Assembly (NCBI GenBank): GCA_964188305.1
Contig: OZ076886.1
Origin: Podarcis bocagei
Taxonomy: Eukaryota
Strand: one strand, 5' to 3'
Length of the DNA stretch: 64,000 nt
How positions within the stretch are numbered: the first letter of the stretch is position 1; each line of letters begins with the position of its first letter. The notes beneath the pieces were generated by a model. It ran no database searches. It was not told the origin of the DNA and saw only the letters and a list, made by a program, of their open reading frames with translations. A program made the translations under genes and the position numbers. Positions 3,324 to 56,222 of the stretch are shown here, in pieces.

Positions 3324-6300
3324 CTTTACCCTCTGCATATTTTTCTGTTTATTAATTTAAAACCTTTATATGCCACCTTATATCAATGATTTCAAGGCAG
3401 TTTGCAAAAACAAAAACAAGTAAAGCAAATAGTGTTGGGAACACTCTGGTCCCAATAGCTGGGACATACTCAGGTGTGTGAGGGTAGATGAGAAAGATAT
3501 GTTGTTGCAGCAGTTGATCATTTCTGACCTGTTCCAGAGTTCCCAACTTCTGGCATGGGGATTGGCTCCAGGATGAGGGAGAATTGTTGGGTCTTCCAGA
3601 AGAGTCCCAGAGGACCAGCAGGCAGAGTCAGCAGTAGAACAGGGAGCGACTGATAAGATAATTGCTCCAGCAAAGCCCCATGGTGGTCTGTCTTACTGCC
3701 TGATAAGCAGCATCTCCTGACCCACCCTGCACTGCTGCATGCTTAGAGTAGGAGCATTGAGGAGAAGACCTGGTGGTCCAGCAGTTTTTGTAGTGGATGC
3801 AGTGTTGAACTTCAGTGCAGACTCGAATATCTAGGGCTAGACTAACTTACCTCAGTGGGTAAGATCCTACACTTTCCTGAGCTCCTTGGAGGAATGTGCA
3901 ATAAATAAATAAAGTGAAGGCCATATTTATGACCGCAGGTTTGTATTTCCCTCACAGTTAATGTCATGTTACCTGGAAGCGGAACAGTTTTGTTTGACTA
4001 GCTTTTGTTTTCCAGGCCATATAATTTCTGCTATTTCCACATGGAATTTGCAGATTTCTACACAGCATTCTTAAGGGCCTTCCATCTGTTTCCCTTCCGT
4101 CTCTGCCACTGTTGCCTCGTATTTATTAAACATCGGTTATTCTGTAAGAATATCCTCCAGTCAGACATGCTCTCGCAAACAGGGCAATCTAGCGTGAACA
4201 GCCAGGACCGCAGTCTGTCAAAGCAACAGTTTGTGCTTACCTACGTGCTGCCAGTTTGCAACTCCCCCAAGATGTGAGCTGATTTTCATATGGTAATGCT
4301 CTTGCATGTTCTGTCAGAAGAGCAATCAGGAGCTTGTGTAGGTGACTAGGTAGGACATAAGAGGGGTTGTTGATCTCTTGACTCGTAAAGACATTCTGTC
4401 AGGCAAGCCCAGCCTCACAGCAGTCGAGCTTTCCGTGTGTAAACAGAGACTGCTTAATTACACAGGTCATGTCAATTAGCGTGACCTTCGCATTTTAAAG
4501 AAATTAATCACTTTCGGCAGAGCAAATCACTCCTCATACTTTAATATTCAGCGTGGCGGTAAAGTGTGCAGAAATGCATTAAGTGACAGAGCATTCCTAT
4601 TTTTATGAATAATGGTTCAGTTTAATCGTTGGTCCCACCCCAAGTCTTTGGACTTGTTGCTTGAACATTACAGCAAACAAAATAAGGATGCCTGTTGATG
4701 CTGTATATTTATTTTGGTCTAGCAAGAAGTGCACCTGGAAAAAAATGAGTTTGGGCGGGGAGGATAAGCTTGCTGAAGTCCCTCACAGTGTCCCACAGAG
4801 TCCCTCCTACATCTCACACCAAATACAACCAATGTAATAGGGTAGGCGCTTCTTTTCGTATTGGAGGCTCCTTGCATGGGATTAGCTGCTCCCACCTGGC
4901 TATGTCATGGCTTCCTTTTTGTGACGCATCAAGTTCCTCCTGTCTTCCATCTAGCAAACAGCTCCTTTCAAGTAAACTCCAGCATAACTCAGCAGTTCTA
5001 ATTAAAGAGTTGGTTGCAGAGGTGAGGAAGTAGAAAGAACCAGGGTGCCAAATGGAATTAGATGGCATATATCCTCTGTCATACAGCAGGATGATGTATT
5101 ACATCCTGGGCCTACCGGGAGACAGGTATGTAGCCCATCTTAAGTTGTTAATTGGGGACCAATATAACTTTGGAGAGATAATGAAGAAAGGTGGGGTTGC
5201 ATAGTGTTGCTAGCCAGGTAATGGAGGCAGCTGAGGTCATCAACCCTATCAAAAACCACTCCATCCAAAGTAGGTGAGACCATAGCACTGTGTCTGTTCA
5301 CACAGGAAATAACTGCACTACTGTTGGTGATATCGTGCTAAAAATTTTAAAACAACACCTTGGATTCTCAGGAATAAATTACTGGGTGAATTATGTCGTT
5401 ACTGGGGGGAAGTACCTGTTGCATCATCACAAAATGACAACTGAAAAGATTATTGGTTTGCTCCTTCTCTGGGTTTGCTACAATTCATTATTGGCAAATG
5501 TATGGTTAGAATTTTGCCTATCAGTCAGGCAGACAACTGACAATACAGGAATGAGATTGCTGGAAAAACAGGCGCCTGTGTTTTCTGTAAATTTCTAAGA
5601 GTATGCTGAAGTGTGTAATTAAAAGTACTAATGGGCTGGTTCACAATGAGCTCAGTTTTCTGAACATCTTCTAAAAATGACTGAAGACTCTTTTTAAAAA
5701 CAATGGCCAATTTTGATAGAGTTTCAAAGTTGGGGGGGGGGGGAGGTTCATTACTGCACAGGCACCAGCCAGTCAGCACTGTGCACAGCCAGCTTCTGCT
5801 GTTGCATTGCAGAACTGCCTCCTTCCTCCACAAGCTTGTGCCTGTATGTTAGTTCTGAGAAACAAAAGGTGGATTTTCCTGAATGGTACATCCAAACCCA
5901 GAGAGAGCCTCAGATACTTCTATTCCTCTGATTTGAGTAGCGTTGTTGCTGTTTCACTGCTTCACAAGATACGCAAATGGCTTTTTATATATCTAATTTT
6001 AAAGAACAGCAAGAGGAGACTGCATGTTAGTAGTCTCAAAGCCTCTACCTAAATTTAGGCTGGGCCTTTAATATCCTGCTAAAGCTGGGACTTGAGTCAA
6101 AATAATAATAGATGTGTACTGCGAGGAGTAGTCTGCCCAAAAGTTATTCCAGCCTCTTCCACACAGTGTTTAGAAGTGTAAACAAAAGTATAAATTTGCT
6201 TCCAGTAAAAATGGAGATTACTGAAAATACCAGGAATGTGCATAAACTAATTGGCTAGTGAAACCTAATGGGCTGTGGTTAAAAATGAGGAGTAATGTGA

Positions 6301-8515
6301 TTCCTAATCTTGAAATATTGGGTGGTGCACCCTAACAAATAAATAGGCTCCGTTAACCAACTCAGATAAACAGATTGATTTCTTAACCTCTAGTTTTCAT
6401 TTCCAGAAGATTTTTTAGCTTCCAGAACATTTGCAACTGAGCTATTTAATAATGCAAAAGAAGGATGTACACAGAGGAATGCAAATAACAGTAAATTTAG
6501 GATACACAAATTTAACTAACACCCCCCCCCCCACACACAATCTGATATTTTTATTAGCAGTCTGCTAACCTGCAGTGCTGCACATACATTTGAAAACTAA
6601 CAATCTATGAAGATCTGATGCTAAAGCCAATTTTCCTCCCCTCTATGTTTGCCTGTCCCAAATTAAAAACTGCATTTTCTTCACAACATTTCGATAGGTT
6701 TGAGATTTGGCAGGCCTGCCTGTCCCCGTGTTTATATGAGTTTGTCAGCACCTCATTAATCAATTTTTAAACTGCAATATGCTTCCCCCCTCATGTGTTG
6801 GCCTGTTGTTGTTTTTTCAAAGTTGCTTCACTGCCTGCTCTACACCTCCTGCTCTCATTTTTTTAAAAGCTGAAACAAAAGTTGTTTCCTTTACAAATTA
6901 GTTTTGCATGTGCTTTGATTGAAACGCATCCCACTCATTAAAAAAATAAAATAAATTGTTTCCTTTTCAAGAAATACACGCAAACCATATTTGGAACACA
7001 CTTGCTCCCGAGAAGTCCTGTTGACTATAGTAAGATTATTCTAAAGTAAATGGATTTGTGGATTTTAGCCATAAACTTGTGAAGGCTGTTTGGAAAGTAT
7101 TCAGTGCATATTAGATATTACTTTTTGCTTAGGCAGAGGACATTAATATTTAAATAACACGTAGGCCAAATATTTCTTTTCCCTTTATAGTAATCAAACT
7201 TTTGAATTCTCTCCCTCTCTCTGTCTGTCTCTCTAAAAAGAATCAGTAGAGAGTTTCTTCTTTTCCTACAGGTGCACTGTGAATAATCACTTCTTAAAGT
7301 AGACCACCACTTAACCACTTTTATTTTTTTCACATTTCCTGACCCTAGAAACAGTTTCTCTAGGGGATTCCTTTTATAGTATTTTCTCTTAATGACTCCA
7401 AAAGAGCCCAGCCCACCCCCAGCATGGCATCTTTGTAGTAAATCAAATTCTATTCAAGGGAACTAGGTAGCAACAGTCTGTTACTGCAATTCAAAACATA
7501 TTTTAAAGATGAATGGCTTAGGTTGAGTGCCTGATGTTGCGGATGTTGTGGGCAGGGAAAGTTAAGTAACTGATCTCAGTGAGATTACGCTGGTAACTAA
7601 AGTTGCTCACTGTTCATGCGCTCCTATGAACAAAATAGTTTGCACTGAAGGTCCGGGGCCCTTGTCATAGAATTGTTTGACATTGTATTTTATTTCTTTT
7701 AAACAAAATATTTCTTAAGTGGTTATGTTTTTAAAACCTTTCTTGGACTTGGGTCCCCAAAACACACTTTTCTGTTCCTTTTTTTCTGTCTCTTATACTT
7801 TGTATTTAGATACCATTTTCAGGTGGTTAAGGTCTTAACAAGAAGAAGGGTTATTGAAAGTGGCTTTAAAAATCCACAGGGGGAAAAAGGAAATATAAAA
7901 GGACAGCTGAAAGTTTGGTGAATTCTCAATGCATTTTGAGTATGTCTTTTATCGGGGGCAAAATGCTCATATTTGTTCCTTAATCAGCCTTCTTAAAGCA
8001 GTGGTAGCATGTAGCTTTTATGGAGCAGTTTTTCTTACGAAGGAGCAAAAATGATAATTTTCCTTTGATGAAGCCATACTCAAAATGTGCTGGGAACTTA
8101 ACAATCCTTGAAGCTGCCTTTTTGTGTTTGCTTTTTTCAGTGGAAGTTTTCCCCATCTGAGAAATCCTGTAGCTTGCTGTGGCCTCCATCCCTGAGGTAG
8201 GTGCCAGGCGAAAACGCTGTGCTTCAACCAGGCCTTTGGCCGATGGACATCTGATGTTATGGGAGGGGGGATTATTGGCTTGTTTTTGTTCTTAATTTTA
8301 TTGTATATTTTATGTTGTAATTTTGTGTTGTGAACCTCCCTGAGATCTATGAATAAAGTTAGTAATTTTAGTAATAAAAATAAAAGGTAGGCTAGACACT
8401 GGAGAAAATGTCCTGAGGGTATTCCTCTCTAATAGCCCTATGCTCTGGGACAGCAGTAGGACAGTGTCATAGTCTGTGAGATTCTTTAAGCTTGTGTCTT
8501 TAGCTTGACTATTTA

Positions 8516-8899
8516 AAGTAAGGTAAAAGGTAAAGGACCCCTGGATGGTTAAGTCCAGTCAAAGGCAACTATGGGGTGCAGCGCTCATCTCACTTCAGGT
8601 CGAGGGAGCCGGCGTTTGTCCACAGACAGCTTTCTGGGTTGTGTGGCCAGCATGACTAAACCGCTTCTGGCACAACGGAACACTGTGACGGAAGCCAGAG
8701 TGCATGGAAATGCCGTTTACCTTCCTGCCACAGCGGTACCTATTTATCTACTTGTACTGGCATGCTTTCAAACTGCTAGGTTAGCAGGAGGTGGGACAGA
8801 GCAATGCGAACTTACCCCATCATAGGGATTCAGTGCTGACCTTACGATCAGCAAGCCCAAGAGGCTCAGTGGTTTAGGCCACAGCACCACCTGCGTCCC
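8516..8899 (-). mobile_element. Sauria SINE, near full length
   Basis: (ACCTTT)n tail seen as aaggtaaaaggtaaagg; tRNA-like head gggacgcaggtggtgctgtgg on minus; TSD gcttgactattta (8503-8515) / gcttgactcttta (8903-8915). Homologous to the copies at 49820 and 52033. Confidence 0.9.
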
Positions 8900-8919
8900 T
8901 GTGCTTGACTCTTTAGCAG

Positions 8920-9030
8920 AGGCTGGATGGGCATCTGTCATGGATACTTTACTTGAGATTCCTGCATTGCAGGGGGTTGGACTAGATGACCTTCAGGATC
9001 CCTTCCAACTCTACAATTCTTTGATTCTAT
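8920..9030 (+). mobile_element. CR1 LINE 3' end fragment
   Basis: ggggttggactagatgacc...cccttccaactctacaattctttgattctatg, a typical CR1 3' UTR with ATTCTATG-type terminal repeat. Confidence 0.8.
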
Positions 9031-9471
9031 GTGTCAAGAAAGATAAAGGCACTAGGACAGGAAATCACTACCTATCCTCATAACAGCATGTGACTACTTC
9101 CTGGTTGCCATGGTCCTTGCAATAAGTTCCTTATGCGGGCTTCTACTATAAAGATGTGGGGAATAGGATTCTGTATAGCTCAGTATTGGAAGGAAGGGAT
9201 ACTTCCAGCTCAATATGCAAAAAGTTGACCTACAATGAGAATAATATTTGGCTAGCACAGTTGTTGTAGTTTATGGACCTTTTTTTGGTACACAGTTATA
9301 TGTTTTTCTTGGTGTTTCTGCTTGATACGTCTATAATTTTTTTAAAAAGAAAAGTTGGCTAAGTGCTTTCCTAGGCGTCACATTCTAACTTGGCAGCTGT
9401 TATTAAAAGTATTGTTACAAAATTTTAGGGTGCCTGGTCTCCCCTTCTAATATCTGGAACCCCAGCCCCAG

Positions 9472-10012
9472 TGCCGGACGTTGAATTTAGCTTGTTAAAA
9501 TATAAGCCAGGCTGGCTCACTGATGACGCAATCGCCTGGAGAGATGGGCCATCAAAAGAGCAGAAGGTGAAGACCTATTAAGAAAGCCATCAGCAAAGCT
9601 AAGACCGTGCCAGCTGGGAAATGGGTGAAGCCCCTCCCTGAGGTCCGAGTTGGGTAGAAGAACAAAGGCCATTAGTAGAGTTTCAGGATTGCAGTTTGCC
9701 TGATATAAGCAAGAGGAGAAATAGTTGCATTTGGCAAGCAGCTTGCAGGCTGCAGAACGGGAGGGTCACAGCAGTGTGGGCTGGCAGTTTGAATCCAAGG
9801 TGGCAGCCTTGTGAGAAACAGGGCCCTCTTGGAGTGTAATCTTGAGAGCTCCCCCATCCTAGGCTCAGGTTGTATATATGTGGAAATAAACTATACAGTA
9901 TATATTATAAAGACACCACAGTCTCCACTGTGCTTCATTTCCAAACCCTGGATAAGCGCCTGGAACCCCTGGAATCTCACAGTGCTGTGGGGATTATGGC
10001 AGCGTAGCAATA
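9472..10012 (+). mobile_element. Putative solo LTR (boundaries approximate)
   Basis: About 540-bp compositionally distinct block with TATA-like gatataag (~9702) followed by AATAAA (~9885). Termini and TSD are not clean. Confidence 0.4.

Positions 10013-14458: not shown

Positions 14459-14752
<294 letters not shown>

Positions 14753-17034: not shown

Positions 17035-17036
<2 letters not shown>

Positions 17037-17081
<45 letters not shown>
17037..17081. repeat. (GT)n microsatellite
   Basis: Direct reading. Confidence 0.97.
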
Positions 17082-19543: not shown

Positions 19544-20715
19544 TATTTATCTATCAAATTTATATGCCAGCTTACAGTAAAATCTTATTAATGAGATAAG
19601 TTAAAATGCATAAAACAACTTTTTAAATGCACTTATGCTGCACCACCACTCTTGTATTTGACAGTTTTATATTAAGGCTGCACTGTGAAGTGGTGTTAGG
19701 AGTTGCTTTGTTAGCCTGGTGCTATTACCTCCTTTGAGTAATATTTTGACAACTATGCACCAAAGCAGTTATTACCTACAGTGATTACTTGCTAGAATGC
19801 AGTTTGTCCTTTGACTGTATCCCTCTAGGCTGCTCTATTCACAGCTCCCAGAAATTCTTCTGTAGGTATCCTCACTTCGTAATCTGTTCAGGCAGAATTT
19901 CATTTCCTCATAGCTGAGGTTGACTTCAAACAGCCAAGGCAGTGAACGAGGTTGTAAAACCACCATGGGCTGCGTTTTGACAGTCGTAAAATGTGTGTGT
20001 ATCTCCTGACATGCTATAGACTACTACATAGTATAGGCGCGATCATGGCTTATCTTCTCCTGAACTAGAGGGACCTCAGCAGTAAAATGATGCGACACTT
20101 CAGAGGAATTCCGGAAAAGAATGAGCTGCAACCTCTTCGCTGGTGTCAGTGTTGTAGCCACTATCTCACCCCTTGGTCTGAATTCTCTGATAACCACAGT
20201 TCACTCGTCTGTAACTAGGGGATGAGGTTGCAATGTCTTAGCAAAACGTGAGCCTGATTAACTCTCTCTTTTTATATAAATTAAGCACTGACTAGAAGAG
20301 GATATAGATGAATATAAACATCTGGGTGGAATTAAGACAGCTAGGAACACTGTTGTAGCCAGTGGAGGCTTGTCCAGTGAGGGCACTGTCCCAGCAGCCT
20401 TAGTCTGCCCTCAGGCAGCCTTCATCTTCCTGCCTTCTTTCTCACAACCAGTTCAGAGAGCTGCTCTGCCAGTCATTGGCTCTGGATTAACCTCCTGCTG
20501 GTCTTCTTACCTTTCCCCCTGTCAGTTTCAATGGGCACTTGCTACCGCTGGTTATCACTGCTAAAAAGCTTGCCATGTGGCATCTGTAACCACAAGGATA
20601 ATTATCTGTAGCTCATGACCCCATAGTAGACCCCAGTGCTACCAGGCAATCAGCGCCCTGGATTGTCAAATGGCTGCAAGATGTAAGCAGACATTGTTTT
20701 CCATTTCACCTTGTA

Positions 20716-20957
20716 CAGTGGTACCTCGGGTTACATACGCTTCAGGTTACATACGCTTCAGGTTACAGACTCTGCTAACCCAGAAATAGTGCTTCAGGTT
20801 AAGAACTTTGCTTAAGGATGAGAACAGATATTGTGCTCCGATGGCATGGCAGCAGCAGGAGGCCCCATTAGCTAAATTGGTGCTTCAGGTTAAGAACAGT
20901 TTCAGGTTAAGTACAGACCTCCGGAACGAATTAAGTACTTAACCCGAGGTACCACTG
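20716..20957. mobile_element. Tc1/mariner (Tigger/pogo-like) MITE
   Basis: TA TSD; TIR CAGTGGTACCTCGGGTTA / TAACCCGAGGTACCACTG; four related copies in the window. Confidence 0.9.
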
Positions 20958-22399
20958 TATTTGGTCACTTGCAGCTCTGTTTCTGATCCTTTGCAGTTCG
21001 CCTTCTGCCTTGCTGTCTGCTGTGGTCAAATTATGCAGCCGATGTAGTTTGTGCAATTAATTATGTAAATTAGGTAATTACATTGTCACTATATTATTCC
21101 ACTCCATTATATTATTCCACTCCATGCAAAGAAAATGCAGTTCAAATTGGGGGGGGGGGGTAATCCATTCTGTATCATTTGCGGATGGAAAGGAACACCA
21201 ACAGGAAACATGGATAGAACTCACTGGATTGATTTCCATTTTGAACAGGGGACAAATAACTGAACACTGACAATTTCCACTCCTGCTTCTGTTTTCATTG
21301 GAATCCCCCAACATCCCTCATTGCAAAGGAGTGGTGGTACTGGCCCTGTGTTATCAGAGGCGACAGATATCACAGACCACCTCCTCCAGCCTGGCCCAAT
21401 GACTTGTGGCAAGCTTTCTAGTGGCTAAGAAAGCAATCCATAGCTGCTGAGCACACTACAAATATTATAGTCACCTAGAGGCTTTTTTGAAGCATTCTCC
21501 ATGTTGGGGCCGTGACACGTGTATCAGCCCTAAGTAAGCTGGGGGGAAGTTGTCAGGCAAGGAAAGAACATGGAAATGGGCCATGCATCAGATTTGCAAA
21601 AGCAGGCAAGGTGGCAATAGGAAACACAAAATAAGTGAGCCCACAGTTCCCTTAGTGTAAAATAAAGATGTTAGTGCTGCTCCGGCACATGTTGAGAAGA
21701 TAGCTCAAATCTTGCATTTCCACCAGATAACAAAGCAGTGGCGTTCAGGTGAAATCCTGCTTCGTTCAGTGGGGGACCAGGTTTCACCGTAGATGTGTGC
21801 AAAGTTTTATCAGCACGCTCAATAGCCTCGCTTCAAAGTAATTTCCCAGCCTGCAGGTTGTATTTATTTGAATTTAAAGCCAATTGCACAATTGGTTTGT
21901 CTCTTTTTCTCCCCCTCCACGGCATAATGCAGTAGCCTCAAAATTATAGTGCTAGGGACCCTGTCGGCTCGCATGCTCTAACACTTTATTATCTAATGAT
22001 CTAATATGCAACAAGGCAAAGAGGAGGTGCTCATCACTCTGACAGGATGCCTAAGAGAAGTGACTAAATTACTTTATGTACCATTAGCGCTAGCAGCCAT
22101 GGTGAACTCACCGTGAGCATTTATGCAAATACTCCTGAATATATTCAAGTGGCCTTGTCAAGCTGACAACTGACAAGGAGTTTAAATGGCTCTCTCTTCC
22201 TTTTTTTTTTAAGGGCCAGGGCTGTGCTTTATTCCTTCTCACTTTCCCCCTCTACCCTGCGCAATTACTGGATCTCTTTGGCAACTGCTTTGATTCTATA
22301 TCAGTCTCAACAAATAGCAGAAGCCAAAAAGGCAGTGGAGTGGTGGGTGGTGGGATAGCCAAGCCGGCCTGTGTACATTTTTCATATGGTAAAAGTACA

Positions 22400-22630: not shown

Positions 22631-22742
22631 ACAGGTATGGCAAATTAATGGGTCATTACAGTGGTGGAACTACATTTTGGGGGCCCTTAAGCTTGAAGCC
22701 TCTGGGTATAGGGCAGTATATAAATTCAATAAATAATAATAG

Positions 22743-22743
22743 C

Positions 22744-22807
<64 letters not shown>
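22743..22807. repeat. (AAC)n microsatellite
   Basis: Direct reading. Confidence 0.97.
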
Positions 22808-23164
22808 GACTGTTATGAGGACCCCTTTGCAACCAATAATGAGGTCTGTTATCTTCTTCAATGGGATTGTTCCATGACAGATCACCATATTTTTTAAAAA
22901 AATTATATCTCAGATATTGATTTAAATTGCTGTACTGGATTATCTCATATGTCAAAGTCGCCGGTGTGAATAAAGATTTCCTATGCCTTATAGGTTTTTA
23001 TTCGTGTGACTCAAATTGGTTCTAATAGACCCAATTTTTTTAAAAAAATGTGGACTAAAATCACTTCTGGAGCCTCTTCATTAGTTTCATAGTAGATCCG
23101 CCCTGGGCCATTCTATTGGTCCATTTTAAATACTGCAACTTTTGAACATTTTTCCTGTTCCTAA

Positions 23165-23688: not shown

Positions 23689-24394
23689 CCAATATACCAT
23701 TTTTTAATGAACTAATGCTATGGCTAGGAGGCAGAGGAGGATTACCACCACCAGCAAAAGTTATCCTCTCTTTGGACTTGTGCATTAACATTTCCTGTAT
23801 TCACTAAGTTCTGGAATAGACTCTGAAATAGATACTAAGTATTAGAACAGGCTATGAAATAATGATTCATTTGCCTTAAACCTTTTACACCAGACTTGCA
23901 GATTAGGTGGGGATGATGTTCCAGGGATAGTACATAAAGCCAAAGTTGGTTGCAATGGCAGGTGGGATTGCCAAAGCCCCTCCCCCCTTTCCACCCCCAT
24001 TGTCTTTTTGTTTAAGCAACCCAGCGCATAAAGCTGAATGTGCGCAAGTTCAACGTGCATAAGTTGTGACTCTACTGTATAAACTTTCAGACATATGACC
24101 TATAATATCAAGGCTGCACTGAAATTGCAAACCAGGACTGTTATTTTAAAGAATAGTCAGATCTCCTACATACGTCTTTGGGAACAGAGTCTGGAATTAT
24201 GTTACATTCCACCATAGTATGTCTCTACATTGGCTTTGTTTAAATCATTGTGGATGCTGAATATATTACTACTGTGATGAAAATTTTCCCCGCATTTCCT
24301 CCTGCACACAATTAACCATCACTTACTTGGAAAATACATTTTATTTGAAAATTATCAAAGGGAAGTTTTGTGTTTGTGTATTAAAATTCTCATA

Positions 24395-24520
24395 GGTAAG
24401 GTACATGGTTTTTGTTGCAGCTAAAATAAAAAAATTCCTTCCAGTAACACCTAAAAGACCAACTAAGTTAGTTCTTGGTATGAGCTTTCGTGTGCATGCA
24501 CACTTCTTCAGATACACTGA
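24395..24520 (-). mobile_element. Penelope-like element (pseudo-LTR) fragment carrying a hammerhead motif
   Basis: Shares ttccttccagt..cacct...agaccaactaagttagtt.ttggtatga.ctttc.tgtgcatgcacacttctt with 32014-32140 and contains a minimal hammerhead, a hallmark of PLE pLTRs. The family assignment is inferred. Confidence 0.7.
24478..24515 (-). ncRNA. Minimal type I hammerhead ribozyme motif
   Basis: Minus strand GUAU-CUGAAGA-A-GUGUG(CAUG)CACAC-GAAA-GC-UC-AUAC: stem I, conserved core, stem II, palindromic mini stem III, UC cleavage site. Confidence 0.75.
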
Positions 24521-24965
24521 AACAGCTGCCTTCCTTTCAGGGTGGTCAAGCTGTGTTTGTGGGTTCCCTTTTCTTTCATTTTATAATTCATTTTATAATT
24601 CCAGTAATTCTGCAGACTTTCTCAGTGCCCATATCCTCATGTCATCAGCTAGGCTTTTCTGTAAGCATGAGAAGGGGTCTTGCTGTGGACCTCACAGCTT
24701 TATTTCTTTTCTTTTTTTAAAAAAAAAAGTGAAGAGTTTTTCTTACTTTAAAAGAAATGAATGCAGAGAATGCTTCCTTTAAAACCAAAATAAGTGACTG
24801 CCCGGATCTCTGGTGTTTGGTAGGCAGCCTCCCTGTCTTCCTTTACTTCACATAGTTCAGGGCAAGACATCATGGGGTAACACTTACCTTATTTTTTCTA
24901 AATTAGGAAGTGCAAGCAACCAGGGAGGCTGCAGAGTGATGGAAAAAATGTTTAATGAAAAGAGT

Positions 24966-25754
24966 GTTGTTGTTGTTCAGTCATTTAGTCGTGTCCGACT
25001 CTTCATGACCCCATGGACCAGAGCATGCCAGGCACTCCTGTCTTCCACTGCTTCCCACAGTTTGGTCAAACTCATGCTGGTAGCTTCGAGAACACTATCC
25101 AACCATCTTGTCCTCTGTCGTCCCCTTCTCCTTGTGCCCTCCATCTTCCCCAACATCAGGGTCTTTTCCAGGGAGTCTTCTCTTCTCATGAGGTGGCCAA
25201 AGTATTGGAGTTTCAGCTTCAGGATCTGTCCTTCCAGTGAACACTCAGGGCTGATTTCCTTAAGAATGGATAGGTTTGATCTTCTTGCAGTCCATGGGAC
25301 TCTCAAGAGTCTCCTCCAGCTTTGTTGTTGTTTAGTCGTTTAGTCGTGTCCGACTCTTCGTGACCCCATGGACCAGAGCACGCCAGGCACTTCTGTCCTC
25401 CACTGCCTCCCGCAGTTTGATCAAACTCATGCTAGTAGCTTCAAGAACACCATCCAACCATCTCATTCTCTGTCGTCCCCTTCTCCTTGTGCCCTCCATC
25501 TTTCCCAACATCAGGGTCTTTTCCAGGGAGTCTTCTCTTCTCATGAGGTGGCCAAAGTATTGGAGCCTCAGCTTCACGATCTGTCCTTCCAGTGAGCACT
25601 CAGGGCTGATTTCCTTCAGAATGGAGAGGTTTGATCTTCTTGCAGTCCATGGGACTCTCAAGAGTCTCCTCCAGCACCATCTCCTCCAGCACCATAATTC
25701 AAAAGCATCAATTCTTCGGCGATCAGCCTTTTTTATGGTCCAGCTCTCACTTCC
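24966..25754 (-). mobile_element. BovB (RTE) LINE 3' fragment, outer element (24966-25320 + 25681-25754)
   Basis: (CAA)n tail; GSESWTIKKADRRRIDAFELWCWRR...LKLQYFGHLMRREDSLEKTLMLGK BovB ORF C-terminus; TSD aatgaaaagagt (24954-24965) / aatggaaagagt (25755-25766). Confidence 0.9.
25321..25680 (-). mobile_element. BovB LINE 3' fragment, inner nested element
   Basis: Own (CAA)n tail at 25321; flanked by the direct repeat ctcctccagc (25311-25320 / 25681-25690). Confidence 0.85.
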
Positions 25755-29591: not shown

Positions 29592-29848
29592 ATCACTGCC
29601 TTGTCGTGGCAAAGGGGCTTGAATAACTCCAAGAAACTCTGAGCTATGCCGTGAAGGGCCACCCAAGACAGGCAGGTCATAGCCAAGAGTTTAGACTAAA
29701 TGTGATCCACTCCAGTATTTTGCCAAGAAAACTCCATGGGCATTAAAAAGGAGAAGCTTTGAGAAGAAAGTGAGTGTTTCCAAGGCATGCTCTGGTTCAT
29801 GGGGTCACGGAGAGTCGAACACGACTAAGATGACTAAACAACAACAAC
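29592..29848 (+). mobile_element. BovB-derived bipartite non-autonomous element (5' UTR part + 3' tail)
   Basis: ggatcactgccttgtcgtggc..aggggcttg resembles the BovB 5' region; it ends catggggtcacggagagtcgaacacgactaagatgactaaacaacaacaac, matching the BovB 3' end seen at 24966 and 25321. Confidence 0.7.
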
Positions 29849-32013: not shown

Positions 32014-32140
32014 GTTACAGGTAGGTAGCCGTGTTGGTCTGCCGTAGTCGAAACAACATAAAAATATTCCTTCCAGTATCACCTTAGAGACCAACTAAGT
32101 TAGTTATTGGTATGAACTTTCATGTGCATGCACACTTCTT
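32014..32140 (-). mobile_element. Second Penelope-like fragment with truncated, mutated hammerhead, inserted in an older repeat
   Basis: Homologous to 24395-24520; ends before the CUG of the core and has substitutions in GAAA and stem III. Confidence 0.65.
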
Positions 32141-34619: not shown

Positions 34620-34681
<62 letters not shown>

Positions 34682-34682
34682 A
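34620..34682. repeat. (AAC)n microsatellite
   Basis: Direct reading. Confidence 0.97.
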
Positions 34683-36048
34683 AACAACTTTTTTGTCTCT
34701 TCACATACTTTATATGGTATAGAATGCTCTGCATTCAGAAGCATAGGGGAAACCTAGTTGGCATTCTATAGGGAAAAAATATGTTATTTGCTTTTGCTTC
34801 TGTTGATGTCGTGTGTGACGTATAGTTTCATTCTTACAGATGCTATTTTACTTCATTGGTTGATTTGTGAACTGGGAGTAATGGTGCAGTCCTAATCCCA
34901 AGCAGGCAGCAACAAGACTTAGAACAGCTGCTGCAAAACTGCTGTGTCTGGAGCCCCAACACTGTTGCCAGTGAGAGAGGAGGACGTTAAAAGTCTGCAG
35001 TTTTTGCTGTGCCAATTCAAGGCTGGTGCAGCAAACAGAACTGGATCAGCCCGACCCCACCCCTGCACACACACAACTTCTGGGCAATTTTAAGCATATC
35101 CAGCGTGGTGCACATATCTCTCTGGCGCCCCCTCCCTCATTTTTAAGGGGGGGGGGCTTTGGTCCAGATTGTTTACATCGCATGGTCCAATGCGCGCGCG
35201 GCGTTGCACGTAAGTAAGAGGCACCCAGATCGCAGCCCAGATGGCCTCCCGTGAAGCCCGGAGCCCCTTACCTGCCTCCGTCCAGGGAGGTCTGTGCCAC
35301 AAGAGGGCCAGCAAGCAGATCAGGTGGCTTGCCGTCTGTGCCATCCTCGCTCGGCGCCAGGATTGCGCAGGGCGCTTCCCTTCTCCGCTCGCAGACTCTG
35401 CAGGGGGGTGCACAGATAGTGATGCAACCAGAATGGTAGCAGTAGCAGCAGCAATAGCAAACAAACAAACAAACGACTTGCCAGTAGCTAGACTGACTTA
35501 AAAACCCAGTGGATCCTTGGATAGCTCAGCTTTGTCCCCATCTTACCCCCTCCCCAAATACCCTGCTTTAAGAGTTTTTGCTGACTAGCACCAATGTAGA
35601 TTCAGCCGCTGGTAACTTTGGACTGTATAGGAGTTGTATAATAGGCCTTGTGGCACACAGCTCTGATTTCCAGCAGGAGGGAATAGCTGGGAGCTCAGGG
35701 AGAGCAGCTGGGTGCAGGGGCTGCCTCAGCTGCCCCCAGCACCTACTGACTGAGCTGCCTGCCTCATTCTGCCAGACAGTAGAACCATCTCTGCTTAAGA
35801 GATTGCTCTTGGATTTTTTTTGTCAGCGTGAAAGTTTAGAGTTGCTCTGCACTGCCCAGGTTATTGGCGTTTAGTGTTTATTTGATTGAATCCTATGATC
35901 TTGTTAAGCTGTTGCCTTATTTGTTCACTGCTCAAAGAACATTGTGTTGCAGAGCTGCCGATAAATATAATAAATAAAATAAATTGTGATGTGATGTGAT
36001 GTGGACATGCTTCTGAGAAGAGAGAGTCCTCTCTGGTCTCCGCTAGAA

Positions 36049-41717: not shown

Positions 41718-42014
<297 letters not shown>

Positions 42015-47000: not shown

Positions 47001-49236
47001 GTAGTTCAACTTGTAATACGGTTCATGTTCCAACTGATTTAAGAGAATTTATATGAAACAGATGACAAGCATAACAACTTAAAAAGTTTTAAGCTTACTT
47101 AAAAACCCCAGAAGGGAGAGGTGCTGTTGTACTTGATTCGAACCTCATTCCACATTCTCATTTCTTTTATGTCTAAGTAACTCACTTTATTTTCTTAACT
47201 AGATTTATATTCTGCTTTTTTGACTAAGTCCTCGTAGTTGCTCACAACTTTACAGAATGGAATGCATATATTAAACACCACACCTTTAAAAAATAAATAA
47301 AAAGAATTAGTCTACCTGGAGTAAGTGCCAGATGTTGACTTCACCTGCCTTTTTTCTCTGTGCTGGATTTGCAGTTAGTAGTAAATGGTCCTGTAATGGG
47401 AGGAAAGATAGTCTAGCAGCAGGCAACTGCAGTTATGTTAGTGTGTACAGAAAAACTATAGCGGTTACTGGGAAATGTTTGAATGTTGACAAAATAGTGG
47501 TAGGCTGCTTAGAGCAGATAAATGTTCCATTGCATCACATTTGATACAGTGAAAGAATGCAGCACAAACTTAAGTGCTTAAGGAGTTGTGACTTTAAAAA
47601 AAGAGAGAATTAGTACCTAGGGGTTATGTCTCAGGTTTTGGGGGTTCCTATAGCAGTTTAAATCTCTGGGCTGTGACTTAGCCTATTGATACACCTGTAT
47701 CATTAGTGGCTACTCCTACACATGCATTCCTGAAGCTGGGGGGAAGTGTATATGATTTATAAGAATCCATTCAAAATTTCAACACAGGAAGTTTGGGGGG
47801 GGGAGGAGCGGTTTTCAGATTTACCCCTTTCTGTAACCTCCAGTGCAAAATGAACTAAATGTCAACAGTTTGATAGAAAGTTTGTGCCCAGAATGACTGG
47901 ACAATAATCTATATTTAATTGTGCTTTTAAAACTATAGTTTTTGTTTAACATATTTACTTAAAAGAGAATGAGGGAGTGTGATCGTAAAGAACCTTCCAG
48001 CAAATCTGCTGAACTCTTTTCAACCTTAACACTATGCAACAATGTACCATAAATATGTCAGTTTCTTCATGGGAACCAACATGTTTTTATTGGGAAATGG
48101 ATGAAATGATGTTGAAAGAGAATTAAATTGGGGACAGACATATGGAAGCTGCAGAGATATTAATTTACACACATACAGACGCATATACACACATATACTT
48201 ATTTACACACACACACACCAGGGGGTTTCACCAATCACAAGATTTCATTTGAACGCCCCCCCCCCCAAGTGCTTCATAAAACAGCCTGATTTGGCTGGAA
48301 CCAATTTGAAGGCTGCCCAGTTCAGCTCAGGGGTCCAAGTCTGCTTGTTTTCTTTCCAAAAAGGAATAATGTCTCACTTTAAAAAAGGGGGGGCTACAAT
48401 TGGAAGACATTTGCAGGCAAGGTCACTCCTTCTGAGGGCAAGAATCATGCAAAAATGCAAAAGGATAGCTGTACTTTTTTTTTCCTGCAAAGGCAGCCAT
48501 TACAGTTGGGAGTGGGTAAAAAAGGAATCACTTCATCTTCCCTGGTGTTTTATGGGCAATTGGTCTGAAAATTGCAGACAGGAGAGAGTTGCTTCTGGGT
48601 AAGAATGGCAGACAAATAAGCCCAGGTGTTTTTGTTCTGGGAACCTTTAAATTTGATTTTGGAGTGGGAAGAACTGAAAGATTTGTTTTCCTGGGCGAAA
48701 TCATTCTCTATGATTACAGTTTAAAGCTGTCAGTCATAAAGGAACTCTTCATCCTGGTGCTTAGAGTTTGGCTGTTGCAAAGCTGTTCCCTCCCTCAAAG
48801 CACTGGGATTGGAGAGGGCCAGTAAAACCATTCCCCTCTGATTACGAGATGAAGCTGTCAGTAACAACACAGCTCTTCCTCTGTGTCCTCTCACCACTCT
48901 GCTTTCCCATCCGTCATCATCCCGCCCTGGCATTATGATGTTATGCAGCAGTGATTGGTGGGGCAACACAGGCAGTGTGGTGTGGTGCCTCTGGCTTCCA
49001 AACAGTGAGCTTTGCTGCTGCATACAAGAGAGAATGGCAATGTGCAGAGAGCTCAGCTTGGTGGAGGTGCGGTGGCAGAGCCAATCCGTGGTGCCTATCA
49101 CTGCACCTACACTAGGCTGAGCTTCCCATGCTTCACCTCTGTTCCCTTTGGGAAGCGGCAACGATTCTCCCTAGGAAATCAGGAGCACAATTCTGTGCTG
49201 CCTTTTTGCCACCCCACCAACTGCTGCTGTTGTTAC

Positions 49237-49458
49237 GGTACCTCAGGTTACATACGCTTCAGGTTACAGACTCCTCTAACCCAGAAATAGTACCTCGGGT
49301 TAAGAACTTTGCTTCAGGATGAGAACAGAAATTGTGCTCCGGTGGCACGGCAGCAGCAGGAGGCCCCATTAACTGAAGTGATGCTTCAGGTTAAGAACAG
49401 TTTCAGGTTAAGAACGGACCTCCGGAACGAATTAAGTACTTAACCTGAGGTACCACTG
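49237..49458. mobile_element. Tc1/mariner MITE (left terminus damaged)
   Basis: Highly similar to 20716-20957; intact right TIR plus TA. Confidence 0.85.
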
Positions 49459-49819
49459 TATATGCCACACTGTAAAATGAGAATGAATTTGGGCAGAGAT
49501 GATGCTATCTTATAATGAGTCAGACCACTGGTCCACCGGCTTCCATATCTGATGAACAGTGACTCCTCAGTGGACTGCCAGGCCTGATGTACTATAGCTC
49601 AGGATGCCAGGGATTGAACCTAGGATCCTCTGTATACAAAGCCTTTGCTTTGCCACTCAGCCAATACCTCTCTCCATGGCCAAACCCTCTTTGAAACCTT
49701 CCTCTTTTTATTTAAGTTTCTTCTGTCTTCATTTCATTTTTCCCTGTGCTGTGTTTTTATTATGCATGCAATTTACACAAGAGATGAATGAGTGGAAGAG
49801 TCATATATATATATGAATG

Positions 49820-50200
49820 AAGGTAAATGAACCCTGGACGGTAAGTCCAGTCAAAGGTGACTGTGGGGTTGTAGCACTCATCTTGCTTTCAGGTCAAGGG
49901 AGCTGGCGTTTGTCCACAGACAGCTTTCTGGGTCATGTGGCCAGCATAACTAAACCACTTCTGGTGCAACAGAACACCGTGACGGAAACCAGAGCGCATG
50001 GAAATGCCATTTATGTTCCCACCGAAGCGGTACCTATTTATCTACTTGCACAGGTGTGCTTTCGAACTGCTAGGTTGGCAGGAGCTGGGACAGAGCAACA
50101 GGAGCTCACCCTGTTCAAACAGGAGCTCACCAACACGGATTCAAACTGTCAACCTTCTGATCAGCAAGCCTAAGAAGCTCAGTGGTTTAGATCACAGCAC
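49820..50200 (-). mobile_element. Sauria SINE
   Basis: Colinear similarity with 8516-8899; internal aacaggagctcacc duplication. Confidence 0.88.
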
Positions 50201-51036
50201 AATGTAAAAGTCACTTCTGGAAAACTAGTGGAATCTAGCAGAAATTTAGTGCTCATCTGCATGCTTTTTGCTTTCAGAAAAAAATATGCTTGCAGCCCTG
50301 TTTACCTGGAAAATAATGGGAGTTCTGCATTGTAATTTGGCATGATGAAATTTGGAGTGTTATTCCAGCATACAGTTCTTTCTCAACATTTAAAATTTAG
50401 CTTGGCATGGAGGTATATCGATCAAAAAGCCACATTCCCATAACACAACAGGTAACACTGTATAAAAAAATATGTTAGAATCCAGGATATAAACACTAGC
50501 ATTGTAATTAGGAAAACTAACATAACAATCCCCATGTCTGCACCCTCACTCTTGCATAGATATATGTCAGTGAGGCACAAATGAAATTTACTTTGACTGG
50601 ATTATTCTCTTGTCATATGAGGTACATACTACATTTTAGAACTTGGGAATTTTCTGTTAAATTTCAATAATATGCTATAGAAGCCAGCATATCCTAGGCC
50701 CTGAATTATTATTATTTTCCTTGAGATGCATGGATATATAGAAACTGCAAGTTGACTGCATTCAAATGTTGCAATGTGTCACAAACAATTTTCATACCCA
50801 GAAGCAAATGCCTGCCATGTATGAAAACAGAGCTAATATTATTACAACTGGGAAGATGAACATTTGCAAATATTGTTGTCATTGGCTTTTATACTGGTTA
50901 CTTCAAAAACGCATTCAAACACTGACAGGTTAATTACACGTTCCAAACCTTTGTTTATGTGATCTGAGAAGAATGTGTTATTAAAGAACTATTTTGCATC
51001 TCACTGATTTCCTCCTTGCTTATTTTTTCCTCCTAG

Positions 51037-51249
<213 letters not shown>

Positions 51250-51820: not shown

Positions 51821-51984
51821 CTTAGGTGACGTTGATGTATTTGAGTTGTTCTGTAGACAAAAGCCTCTGCTTCACAGGTGTGCATTTACATAGACTGAGA
51901 AGAAGGGAAAGTATGGTGAGAAAGCTTGTTCCATATAATAGAAATATGAAATACAATGCATACCCTTTAAACTTGGCATGTAAT

Positions 51985-52016
51985 ATACTTACCTGGCAGG
52001 GGAGACACCTTGATCA
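51985..52016 (+). pseudogene. 3'-truncated U1 snRNA retropseudogene (nt 1-32)
   Basis: ATACTTACCTGGCAGGGGAGACACCTTGATCA matches the U1 5' end (30/32 against the human sequence as recalled); perfect 16-bp TSD taaacttggcatgtaa (51968-51983 / 52017-52032). Confidence 0.88.
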
Positions 52017-52032
52017 TAAACTTGGCATGTAA

Positions 52033-52412
52033 AAAGGTAAAGGTAAAGGACCGCTGGATGGTCAAGTGCAGTCAAAGGCGACTATGGGGTTGCAGCGCTC
52101 ATCTTGCTTTTAGGCCACGGGAGCTGGTGTTTGTCCGCAGACAGCTTTCCGGGTTATGTGGCCAGCATGACGAAACCAGTTCTGGTGCAACGGAACACCA
52201 TGATGGAAACCAGAGTGCATGGAAACACTGTTTTCCTTCCCCCCACAGCAGTACCTATTTATCTATTTGCACTGGTGTGCTGCTGAACTGCTAGGTTGGC
52301 AGGAGCTGGGACAGAACAACGGGAGCTCACTCCATTGCGGGGATTCGAACCGCCGACCTTCCAATCGGCAAGCCCAAGAGGCACAGTGGTTTAGAGCACA
52401 GTGCCACCTGTG
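52033..52412 (-). mobile_element. Sauria SINE
   Basis: aaaggtaaaggtaaagg tail, B box ggttcgaatcc on minus, colinear with the other two copies. Confidence 0.9.
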
Positions 52413-54587
52413 TTTTGGGAACAACCCACTGTGTTTACCACCATTGGCCATTTGTACAAGCAGTGTAGTCTACTAAGACATGCTACTGGTAACCTTAAAG
52501 CACTCCTAGTGGAGTTCATACAGCTCTCTGACCTAAACACAATGGATTGAGTGCAGCTTGTAAAGCAGCAATGCTTGAAGATGGTAATCCTTAACTCCCA
52601 TCTCTTAGGCATCACGTTATAGCTCGCCAGGCTAGAAATGCATTTGGGTCAGACATGAGCCTATGGCTGGGCAATATCAGGGCTTTGCTTGTGGCTCCCT
52701 GGCCCTGCTCCAGGTACCTTTGGATATCAGCCTTCGTTTTCCTTCTATACCGCTATGGCCTCGACTTCTTGCTACCTAGCACTGTCTTTGTTCAAAATCC
52801 CTTTTAAATGGGCTTCCCAGGTTAGACGCTGGCCTGCAGTTGAAACTCTCTTGTCTCTCAGGACTTGTATTTCAGCTGTCCGCATACTTGGCTGCCTGTA
52901 TCCATTTATTGCAAGGGCTAACTTTTGCAGGGTTGTGTGCCTATTGTCTTTTTAGAATCCACTTCAAAAAATAAATAAATGGGGTGGTGGTGGTGCTTTT
53001 TGTTTTCTTTGCACAATGTACTCCATTTTATACACAACAAAGAAGGAACTTAGTGCAGTCTGGAGGACTTAAGAATCCACAAGCAGATGACTGTTTGGGT
53101 ACAAAAAATTAAAAGGGAGGGGGAGTTATACATTTATACACCTATCGGTCTCACCTTCAGAAATGCCTCCCAGCCCTTTAAACAAAATGCAGAATTGGAG
53201 CAAACCTGCTGAATAGTTTAAGTTAATTGAAAATTATAGGATTGACCCAAGAGGAAAATTTCGTTTGCACTCCAATCACTATTACAAATTAAGGAAAATT
53301 ACTACAATTTTGTTTAGCTATGGTTTCACACTGAGTTCACAAAATTAGCTCAGCTGCCCTGACAAAGTCAGCACTTTGTTAGTGATCAGTAGAAGGGGGG
53401 AGAAATAATAGACTGTGGTGTGTACAAACGAAGCATAGAAAAAGCCATGATGCTTTACAGAACTAGGCCAAGTGGTTTTAATTAGGATTATTAGTTCATT
53501 GTAAATTTTGAAGAATAATCAAACTAGCAGATTAGCTGTTTCTTTTAAAGCGAGAATTTCTTGCCATTCATTTTTCCCATGAGAACTTCTTTTAACTCCC
53601 ACATAGTTTACCCCCCCCCCACTTTTTTTTTTTTAACAAGTCTCATTATGGGCCTACAGGAAATGGACCAATTGGAAGTTCTGATCCTGCAACATTCCAC
53701 AGCAGCGTTCCAGTCGGTGGGAGTTTTTCCACAGTGTTTGTCGGTGAATTCAGTGTTCTGGAACGTTTTACAAAACCACAGAGGCCAAATGTTTTCTCAG
53801 AGGAGTTTGGCCTCTGTTTTTGGCTGAAAACAGTGAGGCATCACTTGGTGTTTATTTACCCTGAGATTGAGAATGAGAAAAGAGGACAGAGGAGGAAAGA
53901 AAAGAGGAAAGAGAATTGGGGGTTGTGGGCAGCGTAAAAGCCATTCAGGCGTACTTTCCTTTCTGGTGAAAATGCCCTATCCATTAATGGCCCCATTTTG
54001 TGGTTAGGTCTCATTTAGAAGAAATTATTTTTAATCAGTGTTCAACAAAATATCCCCTCAAGCCACCTGGCTGTAAACTTTTTTTTTAACTGTTAAGTGC
54101 TTAAATTCTCAGGGAAAAAAAGCCTAGTGGCCCATTAATTTTAAGTTATTTCCCCCCTCCCCTTCATTTAACTGCCAACAACTTAGAAATTTGATCTGTG
54201 AATTGCATGTTGCATCTATGAAGCAAGATCCTCGATGCAAGGAGAAATGTTATGTCTTAAAAATAATAATTCTTTTTTGTAAGTTCTGAGCTTCATTAAG
54301 AGAGGGAAACAGTTCCTTGATCCCACCCACCCCACCTCTTTCATTTCACACACAGTCTCTTGCAAAGCAAAACAATTCACATTTGGATGTTAAATATATT
54401 TAAATATAGAAAAAAAGAACTCGGATACTTTCAGTGTTCAGCAGTGCCTGTTTTTCAGTGAACTCTTAAAAGGGGCCAGCCTTAGCACAAAGCAACAATG
54501 TATTTAAAATTCACATAATTGTATAAAATGTAATGTTAGTCTCTTTTTTTTTACATTAAATTCCCCGTGAGGTTTACAGTGTGATAG

Positions 54588-54588
<1 letters not shown>

Positions 54589-54636
<48 letters not shown>
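54589..54636. repeat. (AC)n microsatellite
   Basis: Direct reading. Confidence 0.97.
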
Positions 54637-54638
<2 letters not shown>

Positions 54639-55980
54639 TCCTTGGAAGCACTTCAGAAGGATGTTTATGTTACAAACAGACTCATGAAACCTCCTGACAG
54701 GAATTGCTTTTCTGCATGGATTTTGACTGTCACAAAAGTCGCTGAAGAGAAGTAAAACTGTTTTCAACTAGAGCTGACAGAAATGCCTATGTCAGGCTGT
54801 CTTTACTGAAGGAAATGCAAGATGGTGTGTCTTGGAATCTGAATGACTGGGTGTGAGACAGTCCCATCTAGGGATGACTAGGAATAGGGCTAATGTCATT
54901 GGCCAAAAATGTTTTCTGTCAGCAGAGCTGACTTCCAATCAAATGCATTTATTTGGCTTAATTTTGGGTTTGTCTGAAACCTCCAGTGAATGCATACCTA
55001 AGTATGTATATATGCATTTAAATATCCCACCCTTTTATTTAAACTCTAAAGAGCTTAAAAATGCAATTATTCAATTCAATTATATTTTAAAATTCTTTAA
55101 AATATTTCCAACTGTTGGAGATTTTTTAAAATAGCATGAATCACCTCCTACCTGTGTCAGCTTTCAAATTCCATTCAGCAAATTAGGATTGATCTAGGCA
55201 CCTGGTATAAGCCTGCACAACATGTGACCAAATTGGTATGCATATCAATTTATTTTTGGGTGTACAAATCTCCAGTTTTTGCTGCTCTCCAGAGACTGCA
55301 ATGCTGGGCTGGGGTCATCCTAAACTACCTGGCAGTCCCTCAGTACATGGTTGCTAGACCTTGTACAATATATGATTTACGAAGCTTAACATACTCATTT
55401 AAATGTGATATATTCTTTCAGTAGCTTCTGGCATTAAAATATGACTCTATGTTACATTGACAATCCTATTCTAAAACAAAAATATACTGAGGAGATATTA
55501 AGCAAGACACTTCAAGTTCCTGTGGAATATAGAAAAATTCATTGCATGAGTGTTCATTTGTTCAAAATAGAACAGTACCCCACCTCAAAAAAGAATTTAA
55601 TGTTGCTTGTTTTCTGCCACTTTCTTATCTTCTGTAAATAGCATCCTGAGTGGAGCAAAGGTTTCTGCGTATCCGTCTTCTGATCTCCGTAGTCCTGCAC
55701 TCTTTTCAAAAGATCATGAAGCCAATCCTTTCACTGATTGGAATTACAAAATACCAAAATACTACATTCTGGATAAAAGCCACCTGGGTGTGGGTGTGAA
55801 GAGTTCTCTGTGTTCTAGTCCACACTGTGAATATTTCCCCCCGGGACTGAATTTGACATTTTGAATTTTGTTCATGAAAAAGTTTCCCATTTTCTTGAAA
55901 CTATATCTGGTTTCTTAATCATCCAAATACGTACAATAAAAAAAAAATGTTGGGCTTCTTTAAAAAAAGGAAAGGTAGTA

Positions 55981-56222
55981 CAGTGGTACCTCGGGTTACA
56001 AACACCTCGGGTTACAAACACTTCAGGTTACAGACTCCGCTAACCCGGAAGTAGTACCTCGGGTTAAGAACTTTACCTCAGGATGAGAACAGAAATCACA
56101 CACTGGGGGCACGGCGGCAGTGGGAGGCCCCATTAGCTAAAGTGGTACCTCAGGTTAAGAACGGTTTCAGGTTAAGAATGAACCTCTGGAATGAATTAAG
56201 TTCGTAACCAGAGGTACCACTG
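55981..56222. mobile_element. Tc1/mariner MITE
   Basis: TA|CAGTGGTACCTCGGGTTAC ... GTAACCAGAGGTACCACTG|TA. Confidence 0.9.

Follow-up and report, generated by a model that had tools for sequence, protein, structure and literature searches.

The window, a stretch of 64,000 nucleotides, carries on its minus strand at 24478-24515 a minimal type I hammerhead motif, which lies within a 100-nt inserted retroelement copy (copy A; 24423-24522, minus strand) in an intron of EBF1/COE1. We consider it highly probable that copy A is a young, 5'-truncated, dead-on-arrival insertion of the leader (pLTR) of a Penelope-like element (PLE) family, or of a non-autonomous derivative of such a family, and that it is inert in the intron. 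By its likeness to published systems, the motif very probably works like, and is, a PLE minimal hammerhead. Because PLE minimal hammerheads have already been published, including those of reptiles, and the genome contains them in great number, the single copy matters little.

Read on the minus strand, 24515-24478 is GUAU-CUGAAGA-A-GUGUG-CAUG-CACAC-GAAA-GC-UC-AUAC, the same string in which the sequence-only reading had recognized a complete hammerhead core with a 4-bp stem I and a 5-bp stem II; the descriptor scan and the majority letters of the family described below place the motif identically. Helix I consists of four Watson-Crick base pairs between GUAU (24515-24512) and AUAC (24481-24478). 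The core segment CUGAAGA (C3 to A9) occupies 24511-24505 and is followed by an extra unpaired A at 24504, after which helix II, five base pairs starting with G10.1-C11.1, joins GUGUG (24503-24499) to CACAC (24494-24490) across the loop CAUG. The remaining core comprises GAAA (G12 to A15.1) at 24489-24486, a GC insert at 24485-24484, U16.1 at 24483 and C17 at 24482. The invariant core is complete at all 11 bases (C3 U4 G5 A6 N7 G8 A9, G12 A13 A14, A15.1-U16.1, H17), with helices I and II flanking it and helix I as the open end. The predicted cut falls between 24482 and 24481 (between UC and AUAC), in agreement with the earlier placement of cleavage after the C at 24482.

Helix III is reduced to A15.1-U16.1 and the 2-nt GC insert. 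A palindromic stem III had been proposed here as AAGCU; the palindrome is present, but it reads AGCU (A15.1-G-C-U16.1), and a 4-bp helix III is possible only intermolecularly, via this AGCU. Stem-loop II (24490-24503, GUGUGCAUGCACAC) is likewise a perfect 14-nt palindrome through which two copies could pair, and cofolding of two copies favours a dimer swapped via the palindromic helix II over the helix III dimer. An alternative fold of the 100-nt copy is more stable (-19.9 kcal/mol) and masks the 5' strand of helix I and CUGA. Its 15-bp helix involves a letter found only in the window copy (24453), and we therefore give this fold no weight as a feature of the family.

Could the motif be a chance match in an unrelated SINE or other repeat, without ribozyme ancestry? 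Several observations would be expected in that case. None of the Rfam hammerhead models (Hammerhead_1, _3, HH9, HH10, II) gave a gathering-score match, nor did any match 24300-24700 at E up to 10, where the sole weak match, TUG1_2 (E = 5.5), was noise. The fold energy of the monomer is unremarkable in comparison with shuffles (z = -0.14), and minimal descriptors yield very many matches in animal genomes (PMC4209133). The loose core pattern by itself occurs at chance level (7 matches in the window, 6.8 expected). The full descriptor behaves differently, however: with both helix I and helix II set to a minimum of 4 bp, and with CUGANGA, a bulge that may be absent, GAAA, a palindromic insert of 0-6 nt and UH as its other elements, it finds one site in the 64-kb window and none in 300 dinucleotide-preserving shuffles. 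The hammerhead search that the sequence-only reading had suggested as a check thus succeeds with a descriptor and fails with the Rfam models. The curated models expect a helix III, of which this motif has only the A15.1-U16.1 pair and the 2-nt insert, and the published PLE minimal motifs were themselves found with relaxed descriptors rather than covariance models (PMC4209133). All 11 invariant core bases are accompanied by the PLE-specific bulge, the palindromic 2-nt insert and the short helix I; moreover, the distance of the motif from the 3' end of the insertion is as predicted by Poseidon_Ac, and the family has a PLE-type tail and inverted joints. As the majority letters of a very abundant repeat spell out the motif, a one-off match by chance is ruled out; a chance origin within an unrelated repeat appears very improbable to us.

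The boundaries of the insertion were established by comparing 24100-24900 with contigs from three DNA runs that carry the labels of three organisms (X1, X3 and X5), and with the raw reads of one RNA run. Contigs of X3 and X5 connect 24417 straight to 24523, with 145 letters (X5) and 179 letters (X3) on the shorter side, and one X1 contig makes the same connection with 30 letters on its shorter side. This empty-site joint omits 105 nt, with five letters matching either side, and in their flanks the empty-site contigs are about 1% divergent from the window. The five letters are those of a target-site duplication, CAGCT, seen in the sequence at 24418-24422 on the element's 3' side and at 24523-24527 on its 5' side. 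Between the duplicates, at 24423-24522 by the empty-site contigs and the family pile-up, lies the 100-nt insert, in which the hammerhead is preceded by 7 nt and followed by 55 nt that end in a U-rich tract; compared with longer family members it is 5'-truncated. The element had previously been delimited as 24395-24520, which the contig joints and the sequence replace with this insert and its 5-bp duplication. Positions 24523-24525 also fit the upstream sequence of the family, and family reads align as far as 24525 before continuing into shared upstream sequence, which indicates a microhomology junction.

In each of three close relatives, at least one haplotype lacks the insertion, and the bridging of the empty site in contigs of three related lizard data sets makes it young. 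No filled junction was found among the contigs listed for the three relatives. Because contigs break off at the edges of a repeat this common, we stop short of claiming that every individual lacks the insertion. Since the site of copy A is unoccupied in the three related data sets, the family is apparently active at present, and the insertion could be used as a presence/absence marker in its lizard group.

The host intron is about 27 kb long and extends between two exons on the plus strand. The upstream one, at 14498-14641, is identified by its translation, which matches COE1 in the PDB (E = 1.5e-21); the next one downstream, at 41844-41975 with approximate ends, is placed by six-frame matches to peptides of the IPT/TIG region. 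Further EBF/COE-family peptides were matched in the six-frame translation of the same strand at about 1710-1802 and 51040-51140. Of these exons the 14.5-kb one was checked against PDB, the others being placed by peptide matches, and the gene is probably EBF1 rather than another family member. As the exons are on the plus strand and the motif on the minus strand, the motif is antisense to EBF1, as had been stated before, and so are both copies of the repeat in the window. In the EBF1 sense the insertion presents AATAAA at 24425-24430, by its letters a possible cryptic polyadenylation signal in the host pre-mRNA, and at 24435-24444 a run of pyrimidines that closes with CAG and could act as a cryptic splice acceptor.

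The antisense position raises the idea that the host has put copy A to use, for instance in cleaving antisense transcripts that run across EBF1. The intact core would suit such a role, as would a second copy 7.6 kb away in the same orientation, which could serve as a helix III partner. We nevertheless hold this to be extremely improbable. The empty orthologous site in three related data sets means that there is no conservation, copy A has no promoter of its own, and minimal hammerheads are poor as monomers. Nor were any RNA reads found on the unique flanks of the insertion in the portion examined of a stranded RNA run (X23), of which 12% was read and whose source was a relative without the insertion. 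Copy A is most likely inert at the EBF1 locus.

Other features of the window can be recorded briefly. Beside the insertion lie two adjacent copies of a 300-nt repeat, 93% identical to each other (24967-25266 and 25322-25621), which presumably resembles a SINE with a Bov-B-type core; a 45-nt segment of it recurs inverted at 29784-29828. Several other families of interspersed repeats have three to four copies each in the window, with members at 8549-8896, 49843-50209 and 52064-52413, and at 20713-20959, 49214-49460 and 55978-56224. Simple repeats comprise (CAA)n tracts (about 22740-22810 and 34620-34690) and (GT)n/(CA)n tracts (about 17036-17081 and 54589-54637). A U1 snRNA retro-fragment proposed at 51968-52032, downstream of an EBF1 exon, had no U1 match in the whole-window Rfam gathering scan.

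Copy A belongs to a large family. The earlier suggestion of a dispersed, short family is borne out by thousands of contigs and by a second copy in the window, copy B, at about 32014-32140 on the minus strand, with an approximate 3' end. Copy B is 91% identical to copy A over 86 nt (32055-32140). Its homology starts at core position A6 (the equivalent of 24508), leaving it without the 5' strand of helix I, C3, U4 and G5, and it has U at 11.1 and AGUU where copy A has AGCU; judged by these letters, it is a dead, older copy truncated within the ribozyme. At its other end copy B has an additional AC-rich tail of about 35-40 nt, which fits 28 of the 30 letters of the RNA-read continuation beyond 24423. 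On the minus strand, GUUGGUCU in the body of copy B is perfectly complementary to AGACCAAC in its tail (32088-32095 and 32033-32040). By analogy this pairing may correspond to the AC-rich stem-loop at which reverse transcription of Poseidon_Ac starts, although 8 bp in about 130 nt could also arise by chance.

The family pile-up spans 24423-24525 and comprises 4,579-9,798 contigs per run. Summed word depth, which is not equivalent to copy number, amounts to 1.6-7.2 million on the repeat versus 9.5-63 on the flanks. The family is present in extremely high numbers in lacertid lizards; the contig pile-up, together with two copies in 64 kb, suggests a size of 10^4 to 10^5 copies. The comparison of family members rests on majority and variant letters at each position. 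The letter of the window is also the majority letter of the family at each of the 38 hammerhead positions, and copy A as a whole is about 98% identical to the majority letters. Only three variants within the hammerhead reach 10% of family members: C17>U (24482), which stays an allowed H17, C11.1>U (24490), which retains a G-U pair, and G12>A (24489). The sites of the latter two together form a CpG, which copy A still has.

Conservation of the core relative to its flanks among the genomic copies, for which the sequence-only reading had asked, was not observed: positions varying at 10% or more number 3 of 38 in the hammerhead and 5 of 62 in the rest of the element, where 24447 and 24453 are private to the window copy. 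Dead copies would decay neutrally whatever the constraint on their master, and we therefore reject the comparison of core and rest as a test. The letters are those of a family whose copies decay neutrally around a ribozyme-keeping consensus.

The ends of the copies are informative about how they were made. The 3' ends are discrete (24423, 24428, 24440) or run on into the AC-rich tail, while the 5' ends vary from the equivalent of 24508 (copy B) through 24514-24517 (most copies) to 24522-24525 (copy A). The flanks are unrelated to each other and AT-rich by the loose-end consensus, and some joints connect opposite strands. Among the best-supported loose ends there is no pile of 5' ends at the cut site; nearly all copies retain the whole hammerhead instead of starting there, which fits the insertion of PLEs without cleavage in vitro. 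The family reads in one stranded RNA run of a related organism show no pile of molecule ends at 24482/24481, which is weak evidence on self-cleavage and resembles what was seen for Poseidon_Ac (PMC11167929).

What could account for the clustering of most 5' ends at 24514-24517, where they adjoin unrelated AT-rich flanks? Longer family members extend upstream to a TATA-like box, recognized in a 30-letter loose-end consensus, which is 27-31 nt away, and TCAGTG at 24520-24515 is initiator-like. This arrangement suggests a putative transcription start at the 5' edge of the hammerhead. One reading of it, to which we assign a minor share of the probability, is that the family is a self-standing non-autonomous element and not a truncated part of an autonomous PLE. 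It could be a non-LTR retrozyme in monomeric form, or a mini element reduced to the leader and mobilized in trans by PLE proteins; in that case most copies would represent full-length run-off cDNAs from a short transcript beginning at the 5' edge of the hammerhead. Apart from the pile of 5' ends and the promoter-like elements, a copy number far exceeding that of usual autonomous PLEs and the existence of short hammerhead-bearing PLE derivatives in reptiles (bioRxiv 10.64898/2026.07.22.740005) speak for a self-standing element. Conversely, copy A reaches 24522-24525, beyond the putative start, and was thus not copied from a transcript of that length; the listed joints include no conspicuous head-to-tail tandem joint; and the TATA reading depends on a consensus of 30 letters. 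The family RNA reads, too, extend upstream and downstream into shared sequence, suggesting a longer transcribed unit.

A related proposal, which we advance only tentatively, concerns the origin of the short copies. Its copies of about 95 nt, tens of thousands in number, would be leader-only run-off products: the PLE reverse transcriptase (RT) would start at the internal site nearest to the 5' end of the transcript and copy to a cap site at 24514-24517, some 30 nt past the TATA-like box. If this were true, the family would constitute a natural genome-wide record of internal initiation by a PLE, and uncleaved RNA containing the hammerhead would be the usual template in vivo.

Two further properties of the family RNA deserve mention. 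The reads of the stranded run from the related organism represent both orientations about equally. At four positions (24452, 24453, 24464 and 24479), however, 17-38% of the family reads in X23 whose first mate lies on the plus strand have C where the DNA has T; these letters are nearly absent from reads of the opposite orientation and make up about 0.1-0.5% of the word depth in the DNA contigs. Such strand-specific T>C changes can stem from A-to-I editing of family RNA of the sense strand or, alternatively, from a small subfamily, roughly 100 copies in size, that is strongly transcribed. As to coding capacity, the only AUG within the motif, in loop II, meets a stop after 9 codons, and a candidate start codon is present in the tail.

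We return to copy A as an insertion of a PLE leader or its non-autonomous derivative. That it is a PLE fragment had been proposed from the start, and both the architecture of the hammerhead and the anatomy of the insertion match PLEs, but no PLE open reading frame was found in the window: of its 16 open reading frames of at least 110 aa, the 10 that were scanned with Pfam showed no RT or GIY-YIG domain, and a sub-threshold match to DUF6239 in one window frame was disregarded. Both copies are short non-coding fragments, and the missing frame therefore concerns the copy and not the master element of the family. Further points against this reading are the lack of Rfam matches, the monomer fold, the masking alternative fold, the balanced orientation of the RNA reads with no ends at the cut site, and the similar variability of the hammerhead and the rest of the element. 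An exact scan of metagenome contigs, where lizard DNA is unlikely, returned 0 matches to the 35-nt core. Variable 5' truncation and an optional tail, both PLE traits, are seen in the family, with copy A ending at 24423 while copy B and many RNA reads go on for about 35 nt. PLEs have AT-rich targets and frequent head-to-head inverted insertions. The flanks in the family are AT-rich by the loose-end consensus, and a few opposite-strand joints are among those listed; the target of copy A, CAGCT, is not AT-rich, and copy A is not inverted.

We hypothesize the following course of events. The leader of the parent element would carry a minimal type I hammerhead typical of its class, situated in the 5' leader of each transcript unit that is copied by the element's RT/GIY-YIG endonuclease protein. 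Cleavage would be weak and dependent on a partner, be it a second copy engaged via AGCU or the element protein, and, by analogy with Poseidon of Anolis, it would not be required for insertion. The RT would begin internally, about 60 nt (copy A) or about 95-100 nt (tailed copies) downstream of the cut, and proceed 5'-wards through the hammerhead, with the consequence that most insertions keep the motif intact. Copy A would then have come to rest in the EBF1 intron as a single antisense monomer without a promoter of its own, the upstream promoter-like part being absent. The PLE parentage and the weak, dimeric or protein-assisted cleavage in this scheme are drawn by analogy from the systems discussed below.

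The closest counterparts are the PLE minimal hammerheads described previously (PMC4209133). Their helix I is short, with 4-5 bp, helix II has one base without a partner at its 5' end, and several lineages possess a helix III that is small and palindromic. These hammerheads show low activity as monomers, and some are active as dimers. They occur mostly as single motifs, thousands of them, stemming from truncated copies, and are also found in reptiles. The consensus architecture, the dispersal of single motifs and the occurrence in reptiles are common to those motifs and to ours. The reptiles named in that study are a turtle and snakes, whereas the present family comes from lacertids, and the 4,000-9,000 motifs reported for coelacanth and Xenopus are apparently exceeded here by one to two orders of magnitude.

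The best-studied comparison is with Poseidon_Ac of Anolis carolinensis, whose hammerhead, read by eye, is CUGAGGA-U-(6-bp helix II)-GAAA-CG-UC (PMC11167929). Its RT starts internally at an AC-rich stem-loop 111-118 nt into the ORF, that is 82-89 nt past the cut, and a second RT start gives an optional tail of 30-40 nt; the hammerhead cleaves only with protein, insertion in vitro needs no cleavage, and RNA-seq reveals no ends at the cut site (PMC11167929). Compared by eye and not by machine alignment, the two motifs have a common architecture while likeness in sequence is not evident: both have CUGANGA, one unpaired base before helix II, GAAA, UC and a short helix I, and in both the 2-nt insert together with A15.1/U16.1 forms a 4-nt palindrome (ACGU in Poseidon_Ac, AGCU at 24478-24515). 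In both families the motif lies tens of nucleotides upstream of an internal RT start, there is an AC-rich region and the tail is optional. They differ in helix II, which in Poseidon_Ac has 6 bp and a 7-nt loop and in our motif 5 bp and a 4-nt loop, and in the ORF, which in Poseidon_Ac begins at A9, whereas the AUG within the present motif soon meets a stop. The stems differ in sequence while pairing and core are kept, as expected if structure rather than sequence is conserved.

Non-LTR retrozymes (PMC7229834; bioRxiv 10.64898/2026.07.22.740005) resemble the present family in being short elements that carry a hammerhead but no coding sequence and are related to PLE pLTRs; they occur in reptiles and are often solo. 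The short hammerhead-bearing PLE derivatives of reptiles have a mean consensus of 176 bp, and many are solo monomers (Li et al. 2026, bioRxiv 10.64898/2026.07.22.740005). Retrozymes are distinguished by head-to-tail tandem repeats, circular RNAs and canonical type I hammerheads, whereas the locus in the EBF1 intron holds a single monomer with a minimal motif; lacking a tandem array, it falls outside the strict definition of a retrozyme. The amniote intronic hammerheads (Rfam HH9, HH10) are likewise of type I and located in an intron of a vertebrate gene, but they are single-copy, conserved among amniotes and in sense orientation, while the motif at 24478-24515 is part of a young repeat copy that is antisense and missing in close relatives. 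The lack of a match to Rfam models and of orthologous conservation shows that it is not a conserved amniote intronic hammerhead. The family is very probably a new member of the PLE hammerheads, from a lizard group, the lacertids, outside those named in PMC4209133, and of a kind that has already been published, also from reptiles.
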